DNA from: Anaeramoeba ignava BMAN
Taxonomy: Eukaryota > Protista > Anaeramoebae
Direction of reading: 5' to 3'
Assembly (NCBI GenBank): GCA_028826165.1
Contig: JAPDFW010000005.1
Location: forward strand, 36,418-100,417
DNA length: 64,000 bases
The notes under the pieces were generated by a model that was not told where the DNA came from, did no database searches, and was given only the letters and a program-made list of their open reading frames with translations. Position numbers and translations under genes: made by a program. Positions 34,674 through 46,430 of this stretch are shown here, piece by piece (position 1 is the stretch's first letter; every line of letters starts with the position of its first letter).

Positions 34674-36798
34674 TTAAAAAATAGAACAACATTTGCATTT
34701 TTTAGAAGAAGAATTATTTTTTGAATTTGAATTATTTTGATTTTCATTTTGAATATTTTCTAATTCAATTTCACCGTTTTGAGGGATATTTTGAGGATTA
34801 TGAAAAAAATTAAATTGATGTAAAGGACTACTATTTATAACATTTGGATTTTCTTTTTGATTTTCAATTTCTCTTTCAAATTCAAAAGAATGTTCTTTTC
34901 TTGGAGTAAGTGGTGTTTGATTTGCACTATTAAATCCATCTCCAATTTTCAATTCAGATAATTTACTAAATTCTCTTGTTAATCGTTGTGAAAATGTTTT
35001 CCCAAAACTTGTTGTCATTCCTCCATTAGCTGGATTTGAATCCATTGTAATTCTATTTAAATTTAAAATTAAAAATCAAAATTAAAATTAAAATTAAAAT
35101 TAAAATTAAAATTCAAAATTAAAATTAAAATTATAATTAAAATAAAAATCAAAATTAAAATTAAAATTAAAATTAAAATTAAAATTAAAATTAAAATTAA
35201 AATTCAAATTAAAATTCAAATTAAAATTAAAATTAAAATTCAAATTCAAATTCAAATTCAAATTCATTTATAAAATTAAAATTTATTTTGTTTACGTTCT
35301 AGGTGATAAAATTCCATTTTCTTCTGATTTTGAGAAATCAAATTGCATAGATTCATTAAAATTATTAACTGAATAAACTTCTTGTAAAAGATTTCTTAAA
35401 TAATTATAATCAGGTTCATCTTCAAATTTTAATTCTTGATTTTTATTTTAAATTTTAAATTTTAAATTTGAATTTTTAATTTTTAATTGAAAAAAAAAAT
35501 TTACTATTAAGATATTCATAAAATTGAAGCATTTGATTAGGAAGACCTTCACATAATTTAGGTGTATTATAAAGAATTTTCATATCCTTAATTTCATCTT
35601 TTTCTTTCATTTGTTTCCAAGGTAAATCACCATGAAGAAATTCAATAAGTAAATAAAAAAGTGACCAAAGATCATCACAACGTCCTAAATCCTTTTAAAA
35701 ATAAAGAAAATAAAAATAAAAATAAAAATAAAAATAAAAATAATAAAAAAGTGGAACAAAAAAATTGAGAACTTTTTTTTTGATTTATCCAAAAATTTTT
35801 TTTTTTACTTTGGATTCATGTGAAGCTATTGAAGCATATCTTGCAGTTCCTCTAAAACCAACATTAGAACGAGGCTAAATTTATTTTTTTTGTTTTTGTT
35901 AATCCAAAAAAATTTTTCTATTTATTTTTGAATTTTATTTTTTTTTACAAGTTTAACTTGAAATTCTGAATCAACATATTTTCTTGCTAATCCAAAATCT
36001 AAAATACAACATAATGAACTAGAATCATCAGTTTTTCTTCGAAGAGCGAAATTTGACTTAAATATTTAATTTAAATTTAATTTAATTTGAAATTTGAAAT
36101 ATTTAGTTTAAATTTAGTTTAAAAATTTAAATATTTAGTTTAAATTTAATTTAGTTTAAAAATTTAAATATTTAGTTGATTTTGAATTTTTACAGGTTTA
36201 ATATCTCTATGTAAAAATCCAATCGAATGAATATCTTCAATAGCACTAACCATTTCAATTCCAAGTTTTAATGTTGTTGAAAATGAAATTTTTGAATTTG
36301 GAGATCGTCTTTTTAATTGTGATAAATTTTGACCCAATAATTCCATAACAAGAAAATTAAAATCTTCAAATCTTCCACAAGAAATATATTTAGGTGCATA
36401 TTTAGAAACTAAAATAAAAAGAAAAAAAAATTAAATTTAAATGGAAAATTTTTAAAAAAAAAGTCGAATTTAATTTCAATTCTTTTTTTATTTAAAATTT
36501 TAATTTAAATTTTATTTTCTAAACGGAAAATTACTTTGTAATTTTTTTAAAACTAAAGCTTCAAGTTTTAAAGTTTCTCGTTTATGATTACATTTTTCAA
36601 CTTTAACTGCTACATTTTCTTTTATTTCAAGATCTTTTGCAATATAAATTTCACCTTTTGAATTTAAATTGAAAAACATTTTTAATTTATTTTTATTTAA
36701 TTTTTATTTTTATTTAATTTTTATTTTTATTTACCAAAAGATCCTTGTCCTATTTTTTTTTGTAAAACCCATCGATTTTTAATTGATTTTCCAATCAT
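34674..36798 (-). CDS. Tau-tubulin kinase-like CK1-group kinase with C-terminal Cys-rich/CaaX tail, 8 exons
   Basis: KKIGQGSFG/EIY...VAVKVE...LKLEALVLKKLQ, MELLGQNL, GFLHRDIKP/SNFAL, DFGLAR, VGFRGTARYAS, DLGRCDDLWS; ends KKCKCCSIF*. Confidence 0.9.
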
Positions 36799-36901
36799 TT
36801 TATTTTTAATAATATAAAAAAGAAAAAAAATGAAAAAAAAATGAAAAAAAATAAATTTTAATTTTCCTTTTTTAATTTTTTCATTTTTTTTCTTTTTAAA
36901 A

Positions 36902-38782
36902 ATGAATGAAATTATATTTTTTGGAAGAAATGAATATCCAATCCTTTTCAAAAATGAATCATTTAGAATAACAAAACCAATTCAATTTAAATTTGAAAAT
37001 GAAAATGAAAATGAAAATGAAAAACAAAATGAAAAACAAAATGAAAAAGAAAATGAAAATGAAAATGAAAATGAAAATGAAAATGAAAATGAAAATGAAA
37101 ATGAAAAACAAATTAAACAAATTTCATCAACTTATTTTTCAACAATTTTCCTTTTTAAAAATGGAAAAGCAATAGAATATTCAGATGAAGAATATTCAAA
37201 TCAAAATCCTTCAAAAATCCAAATTGAAAATATTCAAAAAGTAACTGTTGGTTATCGAAATGAAGCTATTTTAACAAAAGAAGGAAATGTATTTGCCAAA
37301 GGAAAAGATATTAATCCAAAAAATCCAAAAGAATTTATCAATATTTCATCATTAATTGAAGATACAAATGATAGAATAATTCAAGATATTGTTTCTGGAG
37401 ATAGTGCAATTTACTTATTAACTTCAAATCAAAATGCTTATGGAATTAGTTCAAATGAATATGGTCAACTTGGTTTTGATTCTAAAACACTTAAAAAAAC
37501 AAAAAAACCAATTTTAATGATGAAAAATGTTTCTAAAATATTTTCAGGAAATTCTTCAAATCATATTTTTCTTTTAAATTCAAATCAAGAATTATTTGGA
37601 TGCGGATATAATGAATTTGGTTCTCTTGGATTAGGAGAATCAAGAAAAGAAAGAAAAATCCAAAAATTAACCAAAATCCAAAATATTCCAAAAGGTAAAA
37701 TAATTGATATTCAATGTGGGCGTTGGCATTCAATAATGTTGATTGAAAATGAAAATGAAAATGAAAATCCAAAAAGAAAACTTTATTCATGTGGATCTTC
37801 TGGATTAAATGGAATTGATAAATATGGGCAAAATACTTATGAATTTACTGAAATCAAATCATCTTTATTTGAAAATGATGATAATATTATTGATTTTTCT
37901 GTTGGGTTTCTTCATAATTTGATTTTAACTTCCAATTCAAAATTATTTTCATTTGGGAATAATGATTATGGTCAATTAGGAACTGGAAATACAAATGATC
38001 AACTAATTCCAACTCAAATTGAACTTCCTAAATTAAGATTTAATGAAAATATTTCTAATTATCATGTTTCTTGTGGATTTAACAAATCATTTCTTTATTA
38101 TTCTCCTTTTCTTTCTAATCTTGAAGAAGATTTGATAAAATTATTTGAAAGAAAAGAATTTTGTGATATTTCATTTAAAACCAAAAATGGAGAAATAATT
38201 GAAGCTCATAAATTAATATTGAAATATAGATTAAATCAAAATCAAAATCAAAATCAAAATCAAAATCAAAATGAAATTGAAAAACTTCAAGAAATTATTT
38301 CAAAAAAATCAATTAAAGAATCAAATCAAATATTTGAAATGATTTATTCAAACAGAATAATAAATCCAAAATTATATTCTGAAATCAAAGAAATTATAAA
38401 TTCAAATGAAAAAATTGAAGAAACAATGAAAAGAATTTATTTAAATGAAAATGAAAATGAAAAAGATTTTATAATTGAAAGAAAAGAAAAACAATATAAA
38501 TTCCCTAAATTAATATTAATAATGAGAAGTGAATTATATCGAGGAATGTTTTTATCTGTAACTGAAGATAAATCAAATAAAGTTACAGATTATAGTGAAT
38601 TAAGTAATAAATCATTTCAAATATTTGAATATTGGATTTATTCAAATCAAATTAAAGAAGAAATTCAAATTACACAAGAAATCATTAATGAAATTGAAAT
38701 TGGAATTGATTATTTTCAATTAAATCAAACAAATCCAAATTTATTTGATTTATTAATTAACAAATTTAATAATCAAAATTAA
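36902..38782 (+). CDS. RCC1-repeat propeller + BTB/POZ-like domains, copy 1
   Basis: GxNxxGQLG and CGxxH RCC1 motifs; LEEDLIKLFERKEFCDISF...AHKLIL BTB and a second degenerate BTB (PKLILIMRSELYRGMF...FEYWIYS). Confidence 0.92.
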   Translation: MNEIIFFGRNEYPILFKNESFRITKPIQFKFENENENENEKQNEKQNEKENENENENENENENENENEKQIKQISSTYFSTIFLFKNGKAIEYSDEEYSNQNPSKIQIENIQKVTVGYRNEAILTKEGNVFAKGKDINPKNPKEFINISSLIEDTNDRIIQDIVSGDSAIYLLTSNQNAYGISSNEYGQLGFDSKTLKKTKKPILMMKNVSKIFSGNSSNHIFLLNSNQELFGCGYNEFGSLGLGESRKERKIQKLTKIQNIPKGKIIDIQCGRWHSIMLIENENENENPKRKLYSCGSSGLNGIDKYGQNTYEFTEIKSSLFENDDNIIDFSVGFLHNLILTSNSKLFSFGNNDYGQLGTGNTNDQLIPTQIELPKLRFNENISNYHVSCGFNKSFLYYSPFLSNLEEDLIKLFERKEFCDISFKTKNGEIIEAHKLILKYRLNQNQNQNQNQNQNEIEKLQEIISKKSIKESNQIFEMIYSNRIINPKLYSEIKEIINSNEKIEETMKRIYLNENENEKDFIIERKEKQYKFPKLILIMRSELYRGMFLSVTEDKSNKVTDYSELSNKSFQIFEYWIYSNQIKEEIQITQEIINEIEIGIDYFQLNQTNPNLFDLLINKFNNQN

Positions 38783-39012
38783 TATTAAAATTAAAATTAA
38801 AATTAAAATTAAAATTAAAATTAAAATTAAAAATTAAAATTAAAATTAAAATTAAAATTAAAATTAAAATTAAAATTAAAATTAAAATTAAAATTAAAAT
38901 TAAAATTAAAATTAAAATTAAAATTAAAATTAAAATTAAAATTAAAATTAAAATTAAAATTAAAATTAAAATTAAAATTAAAATTAAAATTAAAATTAAA
39001 ATTAAAATTAAA
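38783..39012. repeat. (TAAAAT)n spacer between the tandem RCC1-BTB copies
   Basis: Near-perfect hexamer array. Confidence 0.9.
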
Positions 39013-39056
39013 AATAAATTTTAATTTTCCTTTTTTCATTTTTTTTCTTTTTAAAA

Positions 39057-40841
39057 ATGAATGATTGTTTATTTTTTGGTCAAAATAAATATCCAATCCT
39101 TTTCAAAAATGAACCAGAAAAAATAACAAAACCAATTCAATTTAAATTTGAAAATGAAAAACAAAATGAAAATGAAAATGAAAATGAAAAACAAATTAAA
39201 CAAATTGCATCAAGTTTTTTTTCAACAATTTTCCTTTTTAAAAATGGAAAAGCAATAGAATATTTAAATGAAGATGATTCAAATCAAAAACCTGAAAAAA
39301 TCCAAATTGAAAATATTCAAAAAGTAACTGTTGGTGTTCAAAATGAAGCTATTTTAACAATAGAAGGAAATGTATTTGCAAAAGGAAAAGATATTAATCC
39401 ATATAATCCAAAAGAATTTATCAATATTTCATCATTAATTGAAGATACAAATGATAGAATAATTCAAGATATTGTTTCTGGAGAGCATTCAATTTACTTA
39501 TTAACTTCAAATCAAAATGCTTATGGAATTGGTTCAAATAAATTTGGTCAACTTGGTTTAGATTCTAAAAAACTTAAAAAAGCAAAAAAACCAATTTTAA
39601 TGATGAAAAATGTTTCTAAAATATTTTCAGGAAATTCTTCAAATCATGTTTTTCTTTTAAATTCAAATCAAGAATTATTTGGATGTGGTTTAAATATTTT
39701 GGGTCAGATTGGATTAAAAAATAAATCTATTTTGGATATCTTCATTTCACATATAATCCAAATCCAAAATATTCCAAAAGGTAAAATAATTGATATTCAA
39801 TGTGGAAATATCCATTCAATAATGTTAATTGAAAATGAAAATCAAAATCAAAATCCAAAAAGAAAACTTTATTCATGTGGAGGATATAAATTAAATGGAC
39901 TTGGCAAAAATGGAAGTACAAAAGAATTTACTGAAATCAAATCATCTTTATTTGAAAATGATGATGATAATATTATTGATTTTTCTTGTGGATATTATCA
40001 TACTTTGATTTTAACTTCCAATTCAAAATTAATTGGATTTGGTGATAATGCTCATGGTCAATTAGGAACTGAAGATAAAAATGATCAATTAATTCCAACT
40101 CAAATTGAACTTCCTAAATTAAGATTTAATGAAAATATTTCCAATTATCATATTTCTTGTGGATCTTTCAAATCATTTCTTTATTATTCTCCTTTTCTTT
40201 CTAATCTTGAAGAAGATTTGATAAAACTATTTGAAAGAAAAGAATTTTGTGATATTTCATTTAAAACCAAAAATGGAGAAATAATTTCAGCTCATAAATT
40301 AATATTGAAATATAGATTAAATCAAAATCAAAATCAAATTGAAAAACTTCAAGAAATTATTTCAAAAAAATCAATTAAAGAATCAAATCAAATATTTGAA
40401 ATGATTTATTCAAACAATTCCAAAATAAATCCAAAATTATATTCTGAAATTAAAGAAATTATAAATTTAAATGAAAAAATTGAAGAAACAATGAAAAGAA
40501 TTTATTTAAATGAAAATGAAAAAGATTTTATAATTGAAAGAAAAGAAAAACAATATAAATTTCCTAAATTAATATTAATAATGAGAAGTGAATTATATCG
40601 AGGAATGTTTTTATCTGTAACAGAAGATAAATCTAATAAAGTTACAGATTATAGTGAATTAAGTGAAGAATCATTTCAAATATTTGAATATTGGATTTAT
40701 TCAAATCAAATTAAAAATGAAATTGAAATTACACAAGAAATCATTGATGAACTTCAAATTGGAATTGATTATTTTCAATTAAATCAAACAAATCCAAATT
40801 TATTTGATTTATTAATTAACAAATTTAATAATCAAAATTAA
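39057..40841 (+). CDS. RCC1-repeat propeller + BTB/POZ-like domains, copy 2 (tandem paralog)
   Basis: Colinear with copy 1, including ~45 bp of upstream sequence. Confidence 0.92.
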   Translation: MNDCLFFGQNKYPILFKNEPEKITKPIQFKFENEKQNENENENEKQIKQIASSFFSTIFLFKNGKAIEYLNEDDSNQKPEKIQIENIQKVTVGVQNEAILTIEGNVFAKGKDINPYNPKEFINISSLIEDTNDRIIQDIVSGEHSIYLLTSNQNAYGIGSNKFGQLGLDSKKLKKAKKPILMMKNVSKIFSGNSSNHVFLLNSNQELFGCGLNILGQIGLKNKSILDIFISHIIQIQNIPKGKIIDIQCGNIHSIMLIENENQNQNPKRKLYSCGGYKLNGLGKNGSTKEFTEIKSSLFENDDDNIIDFSCGYYHTLILTSNSKLIGFGDNAHGQLGTEDKNDQLIPTQIELPKLRFNENISNYHISCGSFKSFLYYSPFLSNLEEDLIKLFERKEFCDISFKTKNGEIISAHKLILKYRLNQNQNQIEKLQEIISKKSIKESNQIFEMIYSNNSKINPKLYSEIKEIINLNEKIEETMKRIYLNENEKDFIIERKEKQYKFPKLILIMRSELYRGMFLSVTEDKSNKVTDYSELSEESFQIFEYWIYSNQIKNEIEITQEIIDELQIGIDYFQLNQTNPNLFDLLINKFNNQN

Positions 40842-41637: not shown

Positions 41638-43413
41638 ATGGATAATAATAATAATAATAACCAAATTCAAAATGCAAATCAAAACCAAAATCAAAATCAA
41701 AATGAAATGAAAAATTTAGAAAAAAAAGTAACAAAAAATTTAATTAAAGATTATTCAAACCTTTTAAATGGAAATTCATTTAAAGATTTTTCAATTTTTG
41801 TTGAGAATAAATCAAATCCTTTTGAAATTAAAGTTCATAAATCAATTTTATCTTCAAGATCTCCTTTTTTTAATAAGTTTTTAAAAGGGCAAAATGATAT
41901 TAATAAAATTTTTTTAAATCAATTTAATAAAAAAGAAATGGAATCAATTTTGAGTTATATTTATTATGGAAATATTTCTTTTGAGAATCAAGAAAATCTT
42001 ATCCAATTATTGGAAATTTCAATTTATTTTAAATTAAATTTATTGAAAGAAATTATTCAAAAAAAAATTTCAAATTCAATTAATTATTCAAATTTTTTCC
42101 AATTTTTATTCCAAAATCGAAATTTAAATTCAAATGAAATTGAAATAAAATGTTTTGAATTAATAAATCAAAATTTTTCCCAAATTCAAAATAATGAGAA
42201 TTTATTCAATTTAACTAAAGAAGAAATTATCAAATTTATTCAATTTAAACAAGAAAAAAAAGAAATTTTTCAATTTGATTTTTTTCAATTTTTGGATAAT
42301 TGGATTGAAAAAAGAATTAATTCATTAAAATTAAGGAAATATAAACACAAAATGAATGCAAAGAAAAGATTATTTCATTCTTTTTTTTCATTATTTGATA
42401 AAGATTCAATTTCAAAACAAGATTTTGATAAATTAAAACAATTTGATTTTTTTCCCAAATCTTTTTTAGTTGATATTCAAAACAAAGTTATTCAAGATAA
42501 TCAAAAAGAAATTGAAAACAAAGAGAAGGAAATTGAAGATAAAAACAAAGAAATTGAAAACAAAGAGAAAGAAAATCAACAAATGAAAATTGAAATTGAA
42601 AAGAAATGGAAGAAAGAAGTTGAAAACAAAGAGAAAGAGAATCAACAAATGAAAATTGAAATTGAAAAGAAATGGAAGAAAGAAATTAAAGAAAAAGAAA
42701 AGGAGAATGAACAAATGAAAATTGAAATTGAAAAGAAATGGAAGAAAGAAGTTGATGATTTGAAAGAAGAGAATCAAGATATGAAACCTGTTTTTGATAA
42801 ATATCGAGATCAATATCAAAAAGATTTGAAATCCAAATTTGAATTAATGGAATTACAAAAGATTTTTTCAGATTCAGGAATTGTTAAAGATATTGAATAT
42901 GTTAAGAAATTACAAGAATGGATAAATGATAATGATTTTTTTTCTAAAATGAAAAAAGGATTTTCAGCAAAAAGAGATGGATTTAATTCTCAAAATTGGC
43001 ATAAAGCAGTTGATGGGAAAGGAAAAACATTAGTTATTATCAAAACAAAAGATAATTTTATTTTTGGAGGTTTTACTCAAGTTGGATTTAAACATTCAAG
43101 TGGAGAATACATTAATGATTCAAGTGCATTTATTTTTTCATTAAGAAATGATAAAGGAGATAGAATACCTGCAAAGTTTACTTGTAAAGAACCTCAATAT
43201 GCAATTTGTTCTAATTTAAATTATGGTCCAATATTTGGTAATAATGGTGATGATTTTCGTTTAGAATCTAATTTACAACCTGGTTATTCAAATTTTGGTC
43301 ATAGTTATAATCTACCTAATGGAATTACTTATCAATCAAATGAAGCTAGAAGTTATTTAGCTGGTTCTTATTCTTCATGGATTGTTGATGAAGTTGAAAC
43401 TTATTTCATTTAA
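41638..43413 (+). CDS. BTB + BACK-like + coiled-coil repeat + TLDc domain protein
   Basis: FKDFSIFV...[18 protein letters not shown]; three KEKENQQMKIEIEKKWKKE-type repeats; FSAKRDGF...[17 protein letters not shown]...AFIFSL...YGPIFG...VDEVETY TLDc. Confidence 0.92.
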   Translation: MDNNNNNNQIQNANQNQNQNQNEMKNLEKKVTKNLIKDYSNLLNGNSFKDFSIFVENKSNPFEIKVHKSILSSRSPFFNKFLKGQNDINKIFLNQFNKKEMESILSYIYYGNISFENQENLIQLLEISIYFKLNLLKEIIQKKISNSINYSNFFQFLFQNRNLNSNEIEIKCFELINQNFSQIQNNENLFNLTKEEIIKFIQFKQEKKEIFQFDFFQFLDNWIEKRINSLKLRKYKHKMNAKKRLFHSFFSLFDKDSISKQDFDKLKQFDFFPKSFLVDIQNKVIQDNQKEIENKEKEIEDKNKEIENKEKENQQMKIEIEKKWKKEVENKEKENQQMKIEIEKKWKKEIKEKEKENEQMKIEIEKKWKKEVDDLKEENQDMKPVFDKYRDQYQKDLKSKFELMELQKIFSDSGIVKDIEYVKKLQEWINDNDFFSKMKKGFSAKRDGFNSQNWHKAVDGKGKTLVIIKTKDNFIFGGFTQVGFKHSSGEYINDSSAFIFSLRNDKGDRIPAKFTCKEPQYAICSNLNYGPIFGNNGDDFRLESNLQPGYSNFGHSYNLPNGITYQSNEARSYLAGSYSSWIVDEVETYFI

Positions 43414-44655: not shown

Positions 44656-44958
44656 TTTTATAATTGAAAGAAAAGAAAAACAATATAAATTTCCAAAATT
44701 AATATTAATAATGAGAAGTGAATTATATCGAGGAATGTTTTTATCTGTAACAAATGATACTTCTAATAAAGTTACAGATTATAGTGAATTAAGTAATAAA
44801 TCATTTCAAATATTTGAATATTGGATTTATTCAAATCAAATTAAAGAAGAAATTCAAATTACACAAGAAATCATTAATGAAATTCAAATTGGAATTGATT
44901 ATTTTCAATTAAATCAAACAAATCCAAATTTATTTGATTTATTAATTAACAAATTTAA
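44648..44958 (+). pseudogene. 5'-truncated fragment of an RCC1-BTB gene (second BTB only)
   Basis: Near-identical to 38458-38768 and 40517-40828 (KDFIIERKEKQYKFPKLILIMRSELYRGMF...LLINKF); fused directly to the satellite. Confidence 0.85.
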
Positions 44959-45008
44959 AAATTCAAAAATTTTTTTTTCATTTTTTTCTTTCCAAATTTT
45001 ATTCAAAA

Positions 45009-46430
45009 ATGGAAACTTATTTAAATTTAGAAAAACTTTCAAATGATTTAAAAAATTTATTTCAAAATCAAAATGAAAATCAAAATGAAAATGAAAGTTA
45101 TTTTGATTTTGAAATAATTTGTGAACAAAATCAAATTTCATTTAAAACTCATAAATCAATTCTTTCTTCAAGAAGTGAATATTTTAAATCTCTTTTCAAT
45201 TCAAAAATGAAAGAATATCAAGAAAATAAATTAATTCTAAAAGATTTTTCAAGTCCAATTCTATTTTCAATATTGAATTATTTTTATTCAGGAAAAATTG
45301 AAATTAATTTAGAAAATGTTATTGAAATTTTAGTTTTTTCATCAAAATATTTAATTGATGAATTAATTGAAATTTCTTTAAAATTTATCAAAAAGAATTT
45401 CCAAATTGAAACTATTGTTGATGTTCTTAAATTATCTGAATCAATAAACTTAAATCAATTAATATATTCTTCTTATCAATTTATTTTAGAACATTTTGAA
45501 GAATTTATTAAAACTCCTTTTTTTCTTGAACTTGAAGAAAATCATTTAAATTCAATATTATTAAATGATGAAATTGAAACAGATGAATTTGAATTATTTC
45601 AATCAATAATAAAATGGGGAAAACATAAATTAAATATTAATCAAGAAAAAGAAGAAAAAGAAAGATTACAAAATCAAATTTCAAATCTTATTGATAAAAT
45701 AAGATTTATTGATTTCTCAAAAGAAGAACTTGAAGATGCATTGAAAGAAGATTTAATTCCAAATCATATTTCACAAAAATTAATTCAATTCCAAAAACTT
45801 CAAAAAGAAAAAGAAAAAGAATTAAATCAATTTATTCAAAAAGAAAATTCATTAATTTTCGAAACAAGATTTCATTTTGAATCTGATTCAGGAATTACTA
45901 AAGAAATCAAATATTTCAAGAAATTACAAGAATGGATAAATGATAATGATTTTTTTTCTAAAATGAAAAAAGGATTTTCAGCAAAAAGAGATGGATTTGA
46001 TTCTAAAAATTGGCATAAAGCAGTTGATGGAAAAGGAAAAACATTAGTTATTATCAAAACAAAAGATAATTTTATTTTTGGAGGATTTACTCAAGTTGGA
46101 TTTAATGGAAATACAGGATACATTAATGATTCAAATGCATTTATTTTTTCATTAAGAAATGATAAAAATAATAGAAAACCAGAAAAGTTCACATATAAAA
46201 ATGATGGTTATGCAATTTATTCTAATTTAAGTAATGGTGCAGTTTTTGGTGAAGGAAGTGGTGGAAATGATTTTCGTTTAAGTTCTAATTTACAACCTGG
46301 TTATTCAGATTTTGGTAGAAGTTATAATCTACCTAATGGAATTACTTATCAATCAAATGAAGCTAGAAGTTATTTAGCTGGTTCTTATTCTTCATGGATT
46401 GTTGATGAAGTTGAATCTTATTTTATTTAA
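45009..46430 (+). CDS. BTB + BACK + TLDc domain protein
   Basis: FDFEIIC...[34 protein letters not shown]...IRF BACK, TLDc closely related to that of 41638-43413. Confidence 0.93.

Follow-up and report, generated by a model that had tools for sequence, protein, structure and literature searches.

The window analysed here is a stretch of 64,000 nucleotides from Anaeramoeba ignava BMAN (assembly GCA_028826165.1, contig JAPDFW010000005.1, positions 36,418 to 100,417 of the forward strand), with a GC content of 9‒29% in 2-kb bins, mostly below 20%. At positions 36902-40841, it carries two tandem genes on the forward strand (hereafter genes A and B), each encoding an RCC1-like β-propeller followed by two BTB domains. 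Gene A (36902..38782, +) is an intact open reading frame (ORF) of 626 aa, in which a seven-bladed RCC1-like propeller (approximately aa 1-400, nt 36902-38101; Pfam RCC1, RCC1_2, and WD40_RLD) precedes BTB1 (approximately aa 406-501) and BTB2 (approximately aa 505-626), both matched by Pfam BTB. Gene B (39057..40841, +) is an intact ORF of 594 aa and a complete family member. Its propeller occupies aa 1-377 (39057..40187). BTB1 (approximately aa 383-470, 40203..40466), delimited by a Pfam BTB stretch and the secondary structure of the model described below, is a short, degenerate BTB domain with an Asn/Gln repeat insert and has a sequence entropy near 0 across the family. BTB2 (approximately aa 475-594, 40479..40838) is a canonical BTB domain with a Pfam BTB match at aa 488-577. 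The two proteins score 81-85 bits for PF00415 (cut-off 21.7), 66-77 bits for PF13540 (cut-off 22), and 45.2 and 39.8 bits for PF00651 (cut-off 20.5), the last in two stretches per protein. They are 80% identical by BLASTP, and the N-terminal Asn/Glu repeat is longer in gene A than in gene B.

Genes A and B belong to a very large family. A search of the 42.8-Mb A. ignava assembly gave 2,812 first-look candidates, and the 74 that were scored all matched over their full length at 81-86% identity, 67 of them without an in-frame stop. A 28-nt propeller motif occurs 1,083 times in the genome (at most 2 mismatches) and a 28-nt BTB2 motif 1,259 times, approximately 176 times more; the reversed-pattern control of the motif search had 0 matches in the genome. 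The first-pass annotation of this DNA had extrapolated a receptor library from two genes. The family is indeed large, with approximately 1,000 copies as counted by motif, and its sequence pattern was followed in the 72 intact copies that were extracted and aligned. Since 612 genes are given as 4.1% of all genes in the A. ignava genome paper (PMC11550330), the genome holds approximately 14,900 genes, and the RCC1-BTB family amounts to approximately 7% of them. At approximately 1.8 kb per copy, we estimate the total family DNA at approximately 2 Mb.

Among public proteins, 718 match at E ≤ 1e-10, and the best 120 are all from A. ignava. The automatic annotation names of the matches are claret, Btk-binding protein-related, and RCC1 or BTB proteins. 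In a representative library at 50% identity, the family collapses into a few clusters. Relatives down to approximately 35% identity are all from A. ignava, and the nearest homologue identified in another species is a low-copy A. flamelloides protein with approximately 30% identity (a cluster of three sequences from two strains). Since the close relatives are confined to A. ignava, the expansion belongs to this lineage alone. Contigs of hydrothermal-vent and microbial-mat metagenomes match the family framework (for example, an 89-nt stretch without differences and a 183-nt stretch with 3), indicating that A. ignava or close relatives are present in vent and mat habitats. Longer A. ignava proteins (P0124, P0125, and P0128, of 838-1096 aa, as well as P0001 and P0003) carry the RCC1-BTB unit after an extra N-terminal region and have the source name 'aardvark'. 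In 7 of the 72 aligned copies (L009, L014, L020, L037, L044, L049, and L051), the C-terminus is a polybasic stretch with a CaaX box (CLIF or CSIF), which suggests that a prenylated, membrane-bound subset of the family may exist. The CaaX box is absent from the C-termini of genes A and B, and by inspection no hydrophobic leader is present at their N-termini.

The main text of the genome paper makes no mention of RCC1, BTB, ubiquitin, or cullin (PMC11550330). In the part of its supplements available to us, such names occur only among candidates for lateral gene transfer, mostly of A. flamelloides, and six family locus tags were not found in that part (PMC11550330). Our literature search found no paper joining Anaeramoeba with RCC1 or describing the family.

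Constant scaffold and variable propeller face

The alignment of the 72 copies has 582 well-occupied columns. Column entropy is below 0.5 bit in 416 of these and at least 2 bits in 37, and the latter are hereafter called hypervariable. The hypervariable columns hold 8-17 residue types each, and all of them lie within the propeller (residues 9-371 of gene B), with none in the BTB half. They correspond to gene B residues 9, 11, 12, 21, 22, 54, 94, 95, 111, 143, 144, 162, 163, 174, 194, 196, 212, 214, 215, 226, 228, 229, 231, 251, 252, 276, 278, 279, 285, 313, 314, 330, 332, 343, 345, 370, and 371, and to gene A residues 9, 11, 12, 21, 22, 78, 118, 119, 135, 167, 168, 186, 187, 198, 218, 220, 236, 238, 239, 249, 251, 252, 254, 274, 275, 299, 301, 302, 309, 336, 337, 353, 355, 366, 368, 393, and 394. 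These residues adjoin the RCC1 hallmark motifs G-[xx]-H and G-x-N-[xx]-GQLG. The median nucleotide distance between copies is 2.6% in the framework (range 1.4-4.4%) and 46% at hypervariable codons, with no correlation between the two (r = 0.015), and the copies form a star-like tree. One window of 9 codons has 68 haplotypes in 72 genes, and the hypervariable columns are statistically independent of each other. Cassette shuffling was rejected as a source of this diversity, given that nearly all loop haplotypes are unique and the columns independent.

From genes A and B, the first-pass annotation had read a constant scaffold with variable loops, in which the differences cluster at equivalent positions of each blade. 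All of its paired loop motifs are present in the BLASTP alignment (SSTYFS/ASSFFS, VGYRNE/VGVQNE, CGRWHS/CGNIHS, VGFLHN/CGYYHT, and the rest), and both of the codon strings that it quoted, TGT GGG CGT TGG CAT and TGT GGA AAT ATC CAT, were found. When the hypervariable columns were set from the 70 other paralogs, with genes A and B excluded, the two genes differed at 29 of 37 hypervariable and 59 of 545 other columns (Fisher p = 3e-19). Their framework is nearly identical (dS 0.058, dN 0.011), and dN at their hypervariable codons is 0.93. The per-site entropies bear this reading out, and the pattern recurs across the 72 sampled copies of the approximately 1,000-member family.

An AlphaFold2 model of gene B, computed from a 56-sequence alignment, has a mean predicted local distance difference test (pLDDT) of 90.0 and a predicted template modelling score (pTM) of 0.88. 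It consists of a β-propeller of 28 strands (residues 1-377) and a helical and BTB region (residues 383-594). Foldseek matched the model to RCC1, the RCC1-like domains (RLDs) of HERC2, RPGR, and UVR8 at E values of approximately 1e-22 and target template modelling (TM) scores of 0.67-0.82, including TM scores of 0.75-0.82 to 3MVD, 7Q40, and 1A12. The 28 strands were ordered along the chain, and the inter-strand loops were numbered odd (face 1) or even (face 2). The 14 odd loops contain 36 residues of at least 2 bits and have a mean entropy of 1.27 bits, and the 13 even loops contain 0 such residues and have a mean entropy of 0.23 bits (p = 2e-22). Hypervariable residues occur in 14 of 14 odd loops and 0 of 13 even loops, and 36 of the 37 lie in or at the edges of odd loops. 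Since alternate loops of an up-and-down β-meander share one face, the variable residues are predicted to cover one face of the propeller. A scatter of variable sites over the fold, named at the outset as a result that would speak against a recognition repertoire, is not what the model displays.

UVR8, the HERC2 RLD2-peptide complex, RPGR-PDE6D, and RCC1-Ran have the same fold as the model (TM 0.67-0.82) and bind their partners through one propeller face. In an HMMER alignment, residues 313-314 of gene B, the xx of CG-xx-HT, align to the Trp and Arg of the UVR8 motif GWRHT, which form the UVR8 dimer interface (PMC4501546). The Trp and Arg of GWRHT correspond to the hypervariable dipeptide positions of G-x-x-H in the A. 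ignava family. UVR8-type proteins conserve their surface residues for one partner, whereas the A. ignava paralogs randomise the same positions.

Selection and exchange among the copies

Nei-Gojobori estimates were made over 400 random pairs of copies. With sites classed by entropy, a classing that is circular, they gave a dS of approximately 0.09 and a dN of 0.007-0.018 at framework sites, a dS of approximately 0.11 and a dN of 0.22 at intermediate columns, and a dS of 0.35 and a dN of 0.84 at hypervariable codons. Since the entropy classing is circular, the test was repeated on a partition taken from the predicted structure alone. In that partition, the face-1 loops (108 codons) have a πN/πS of 1.55, with pN greater than pS in 96% of pairs, and the corresponding ratios are 0.50 for the face-2 loops, 0.80 for the strands, and 0.38 for the BTB tail. 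The first-pass annotation had linked its receptor idea to a dN/dS above 1 at the variable codons, and both this face-1 ratio and a hypervariable-codon dN approximately 8 times the framework dS agree with it.

The residues found at the hypervariable positions are also unusual. Tyr makes up 17.6% of them, compared with 4.1% in the framework, and is followed in abundance by Asn, Lys, Ser, Asp, and Glu. Ile (2.4%), Leu, and Val are underrepresented. Since AT-biased mutation would favour Ile, Lys, Asn, and Phe, the composition itself is selected. It resembles that of protein-binding surfaces.

Among pairs of copies with the same residue, the synonymous difference amounts to 0.076 for hypervariable codons and 0.044 for the framework (1.7-fold), and the ancestral third base, rare C included, is often retained while positions 1 and 2 change. 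These two observations speak against mutation being simply faster at these sites and against pure hypermutation. A mutation rate raised at the variable codons regardless of coding effect, as in programmed hypermutation systems of the somatic or diversity-generating retroelement-like kind, is not what the synonymous values and retained third bases display. In codons no more than 3 codons away from a hypervariable site, synonymous diversity is raised 2-3 fold when like amino acids are compared; a first estimate of 5-7 fold had been inflated by Gly codons. This rise fits hitchhiking over a few nucleotides.

The framework is shuffled at a very fine scale. Of the pairs formed by 82 informative framework sites, 84% violate the four-gamete test, and mean r2 is 0.14 within 10 nt and falls to 0.015 (equal to 1/n) beyond approximately 10-30 nt. 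The same decay is seen among the 39 framework sites with a minor allele frequency of at least 25%. For these 39 sites, which include A/T and C/A polymorphisms, recurrent AT-biased mutation was rejected as the source of the linkage equilibrium. Since linkage is lost within approximately 10 nt, the paralogs behave as a freely recombining population, a recombination signature that we attribute to gene conversion. According to a conversion model of our own calculation, exchange and coalescence between two sites at a distance d stand in a ratio of approximately (n-1)d/L. For approximately 1,000 copies (n) and tracts whose length L is a few hundred nucleotides, the same calculation predicts loss of linkage at approximately 10 nt. 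Homogenisation of this kind caps an unconstrained site at the synonymous level of approximately 0.09, and the loop codons show 0.5, so diversifying selection or, less likely, targeted mutation is needed.

Targeted mutation deserves consideration in its own right. Loop diversity could stem mainly from programmed or site-targeted mutation, such as error-prone repair acting locally or micro-conversion templated by hidden donors, with selection acting only as a filter. The hypervariable codons are near saturation in a framework that is 97% identical, each loop has a near-unique dipeptide (the 68 haplotypes in 72 genes), the hypervariable positions are mutually independent as in a randomised library, and synonymous diversity rises 2-3 fold within 3 codons of them, all of which speak for such a mechanism. 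However, the 1.7-fold synonymous difference at hypervariable codons is small next to a non-synonymous one of approximately 28-70 fold, and third positions are often ancestral, rare C included. In addition, the excess of Tyr, Asn, Ser, and Asp and the shortage of Ile and Leu need selection, and by our own calculation ordinary conversion tracts in approximately 1,000 copies would already give linkage over approximately 10 nt. We therefore regard targeted mutation as an unlikely main source of the diversity.

The same measurements bear on the notion that the family arose by recent amplification of a tandem gene, is largely without function or selfish, and has loops that are merely unconstrained and serve no repertoire. 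Copies in tandem with microsatellite spacers would favour unequal crossing-over, approximately 9% of the scored copies have a stop codon, the window contains an orphan fragment (described below), and a transcript source is missing among the 120 best public records. However, 67 of 74 ORFs of approximately 1.8 kb are intact in a genome of approximately 15-19% GC, and framework dN/dS is 0.09-0.19. Unconstrained sites would reach only approximately 0.09 under conversion and not 0.5, and the composition of the variable residues is non-neutral. A functionless array is very improbable on these grounds.

Predicted Cul3 docking and possible recognition functions

The A. ignava genome contains several cullin loci and a single Cul3 locus, on contig C58. 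The best PDB match of this locus is human Cullin-3 (E = 4e-127, versus 2e-107 for Cul4), and its public protein (P0271, 736 aa) has the source name cullin-3a-related and is also found in the transcriptome set. At least three Cul4-like loci (L074, L075, and L079) are present, and these and the Cul1/2-like locus L077 were set aside as complex partners. A tandem pair of Cul1/2-like cullin genes is located at C57:231551-239837.

In BTB2 of gene B, the φ-x-E motif of the α3-β4 region, which contacts Cul3 in the SPOP and KLHL-Cul3 structures, is V521-T522-E523. Residues 505-534 are invariant among the 72 copies except at positions 523 and 525. At residue 523 (window 40623-40625), 57 copies have Glu, 14 have Asn, and 1 has Lys; at residue 525, 50 copies have Lys and 22 have Thr. 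To judge from the alignment, the dimorphism at 523 and 525 could mark two functional tail classes.

A complex of residues 1-200 of the Cul3 protein P0271 with residues 378-594 of gene B was predicted together with three controls. The predicted BTB2-Cul3 complex has an interface score (ipSAE) of 0.75, versus 0.00 for the best control. Of 78 solved complexes, 51 attain the mark set for this score, as do 2 of 108 mismatched pairs. Agreement between the runs extends to at least 71% of contacts, and the partners have pLDDT values of 87 or more. In the prediction, residues 42-55 and 110-121 of Cul3 (helices H2/H5) interact with residues 512-523, 529-532, and 571-574 of BTB2, and this modelled interface has the canonical geometry. 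The suggestion in the first-pass annotation that the BTB domains recruit Cul3 thus holds to the extent that the proteins are candidate Cul3 adaptors, with a Cul3 orthologue in the genome and a predicted complex that passes its controls.

Proteins with RCC1 and BTB domains are widespread. Human IBtk-α and RCBTB1/2 resemble the family in domain logic, in that one or two BTB domains come after RCC1-like repeats, and their BTB engages Cul3, as is predicted for the A. ignava proteins: for IBtk-α, a proven Cul3 receptor, the substrate is Pdcd4 (PMC4447969), and RCBTB1 has been implicated in the same adaptor role (PMC4974088). The source annotation also places many family members under 'BTK-binding protein-related'. 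Unlike the A. ignava family, however, IBtk-α and RCBTB1/2 are single-copy conserved genes with defined substrates, and no ankyrin repeats, a feature of IBtk, were found in genes A and B by Pfam. The RCC1-BTB architecture is common to the family and IBtk/RCBTB, and we claim no membership in that group.

In their evolution, the copies are better compared with other adaptor expansions. Expanded, positively selected E3-adaptor families are known among the F-box proteins of nematodes and plants and the MATH-BTB proteins of C. elegans and grasses (PMC8120010, PMC4091423). Like the RCC1-BTB family with its candidate Cul3 adaptors, these are large species-specific expansions of cullin adaptors with a conserved ligase-docking domain and selection on the substrate-binding domain, and they are proposed to recognise foreign proteins. 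Both lineage-specific expansion and a non-synonymous excess confined to the binding domain, as in families of the F-box/MATH-BTB type, were found here. Lineage-specific, positively selected E3-adaptor families were reportedly described by Thomas in 2006. The binder of A. ignava differs from these in being an RCC1-like propeller and not MATH, FTH, or kelch. Its copies are far more alike (approximately 97% framework DNA identity), with variation limited to loop residues of one face, and approximately 1,000 of them are present in a 43-Mb protist genome, in which linkage equilibrium at 10 nt shows concerted evolution. What sets the family apart is its scaffold, its copy number, and how sharply its constant and variable parts are divided.

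A homogenised framework, Tyr/Ser-rich hypervariable contacts, and mosaic exchange are also shared with the major histocompatibility complex (MHC), immunoglobulin V segments, and the cassettes of lamprey variable lymphocyte receptors. Multigene families under gene conversion and diversifying selection, such as MHC and immunoglobulin V segments, are said to be the subject of Ohta's models. In contrast to these receptors, the A. ignava proteins appear intracellular and ligase-coupled, have a β-propeller scaffold, and show no evidence of somatic assembly in the assembled contigs from which they are known. The term 'antibody-like', used in the first-pass annotation, may fit as an analogy for a germline library and only as such.

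We consider it fairly probable that the family is a germline-encoded repertoire of substrate adaptors for Cul3, diversified on one propeller face and kept by duplication, gene conversion, and diversifying selection. In this repertoire, the near-invariant BTB2 would dock on the N-terminal helices of Cul3, and the seven-bladed RCC1-like propeller would present 14 loops on one face, where approximately 37 to 66 residues differ almost randomly. Each paralog may then recognise a protein surface of its own and bring the bound protein to the Cul3 ligase, which would ubiquitinate it. The repertoire would be encoded in the germline, with new copies arising by tandem duplication and (AAAATT)n spacers lying between the units. 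Very frequent ectopic gene conversion would hold the scaffold approximately 97% identical, and diversifying selection would keep the loop residues different. Protein production, Cul3 binding, substrate binding, and substrate identity are the parts of this reading that we infer.

Several points weigh against it. The faces were assigned from the order of strands in a predicted model, that is, indirectly and not from coordinates or a solved structure. The Glu of φ-x-E is not fixed, with Asn in 14 of 72 copies. Since solved BTB-Cul3 complexes exist, the predicted complex may reflect memory, and its pass indicates likeness and not binding. The 2-3 fold synonymous rise near the loops is possibly also compatible with a local mutation rise. 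A parsimony (SLAC-like) site test placed 66 sites above the neutral expectation, with 3.8 synonymous changes per site, but this tree-based test is weak because pervasive recombination inflates the counts, and tree-free diversity ratios were relied on instead. Finally, none of the 120 best public records of the family has a transcriptome source.

What the adaptors would recognise is a separate matter. Tentatively, and with less confidence than in the repertoire itself, we propose an intracellular recognition system in which approximately 1,000 binders with randomised Tyr-rich loops and a putative Cul3-docking tail could detect proteins of symbionts, prey bacteria, or viruses, as well as secreted effectors, and mark them for ubiquitination. 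Such a system would correspond, in a protist, to a repertoire of immune receptors, with a scaffold that is not known in this role. Alternatively, the family may regulate the amoeba's own proteins, with propellers engaging expanded small-GTPase and trafficking families as exchange factors or Cul3 adaptors and loops that track endogenous paralogs. RCC1-like domains are classic GTPase partners, the Foldseek matches include RCC1-Ran and RPGR, and source annotations include 'claret' and 'RCC1-like G exchanging factor-like'; moreover, Rab and TBC families are much expanded in Anaeramoeba according to the genome paper (PMC11550330). However, approximately 1,000 near-random receptors seem beyond the need of GTPase families, and the star-like tree has no subfamily structure. 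Conserved partners should give clades that share loops, and the columns are instead independent, which makes regulation of endogenous proteins improbable. Recognition of self and non-self between amoebae, as in allorecognition, mating compatibility, or toxin-antidote systems, in place of defence against microbes or viruses, would also explain extreme diversity, since an advantage of rare variants is typical of such loci and the data do not separate classes of target. Such systems, however, usually have few highly polymorphic loci and not approximately 1,000 paralogs in one genome, and genes A and B have no secretion or membrane signal (no hydrophobic leader, no CaaX). We consider this very unlikely.

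If the proposed germline repertoire of Cul3 adaptors is real, a free-living anaerobic protist devotes approximately 7% of its genes to one binder family. It would also be a natural experiment in protein-library design, in which approximately 40 randomised positions sit on a rigid propeller with 14 loops on one face, and the RCC1 propeller may serve as a scaffold for engineered binders or targeted degradation. The family could show how a single-celled eukaryote with bacterial symbionts and bacterial prey tells cytoplasmic proteins apart. Concerted evolution and diversifying selection are combined here with unusual clarity, with linkage lost within approximately 10 nt over approximately 1,000 copies, and the family thereby makes Ohta-type models directly testable.

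Flanks and neighbourhood of the two genes

Genes A and B are separated by an (AAAATT)n-type microsatellite spacer (38830..39013). According to a flank comparison of the sampled copies (24 of 72 displayed), (AAAATT)n microsatellite lies on both sides of most family members, and such spacers are plausible substrates for unequal crossing-over. In the comparison of upstream flanks, a conserved T-rich promoter-proximal segment of approximately 35-45 nt, ending in CTTTT(T/C)AAAA, precedes the ATG of gene B (39012..39056, +), and a matching segment precedes gene A (approximately 36857-36901, +). Farther upstream, the flanks are microsatellite or unrelated among the sampled copies. A second, non-repeat 3' flank is common to gene B, L003, and L007, and it may mark array ends.

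Downstream of gene B, an orphan fragment of a third family member (44711..45046, +) was identified by its ORF translation and as the third match of the BTB2 motif on the contig (C7:81137). It keeps approximately the last 80 residues of BTB2, from MRSELYRGMF on, lacks a propeller on its upstream side, and continues into the beginning of the next gene. On either side of the fragment are paralogous BTB and TLDc genes (41638-43413, +, and 45009-46430, +), a second BTB family in the neighbourhood of genes A and B. The C-terminal TLDc halves of the two are nearly identical, and the gene at 41638-43413 also has a tandem Glu/Lys-rich coiled repeat. Upstream, the first exon of a protein kinase gene (36727-36951, −; MIGKSIKNRWVLQKKIGQGSFGK...) is arranged head-to-head with gene A, approximately 100 nt from the ATG of gene A, indicating that family members are interspersed among ordinary genes.

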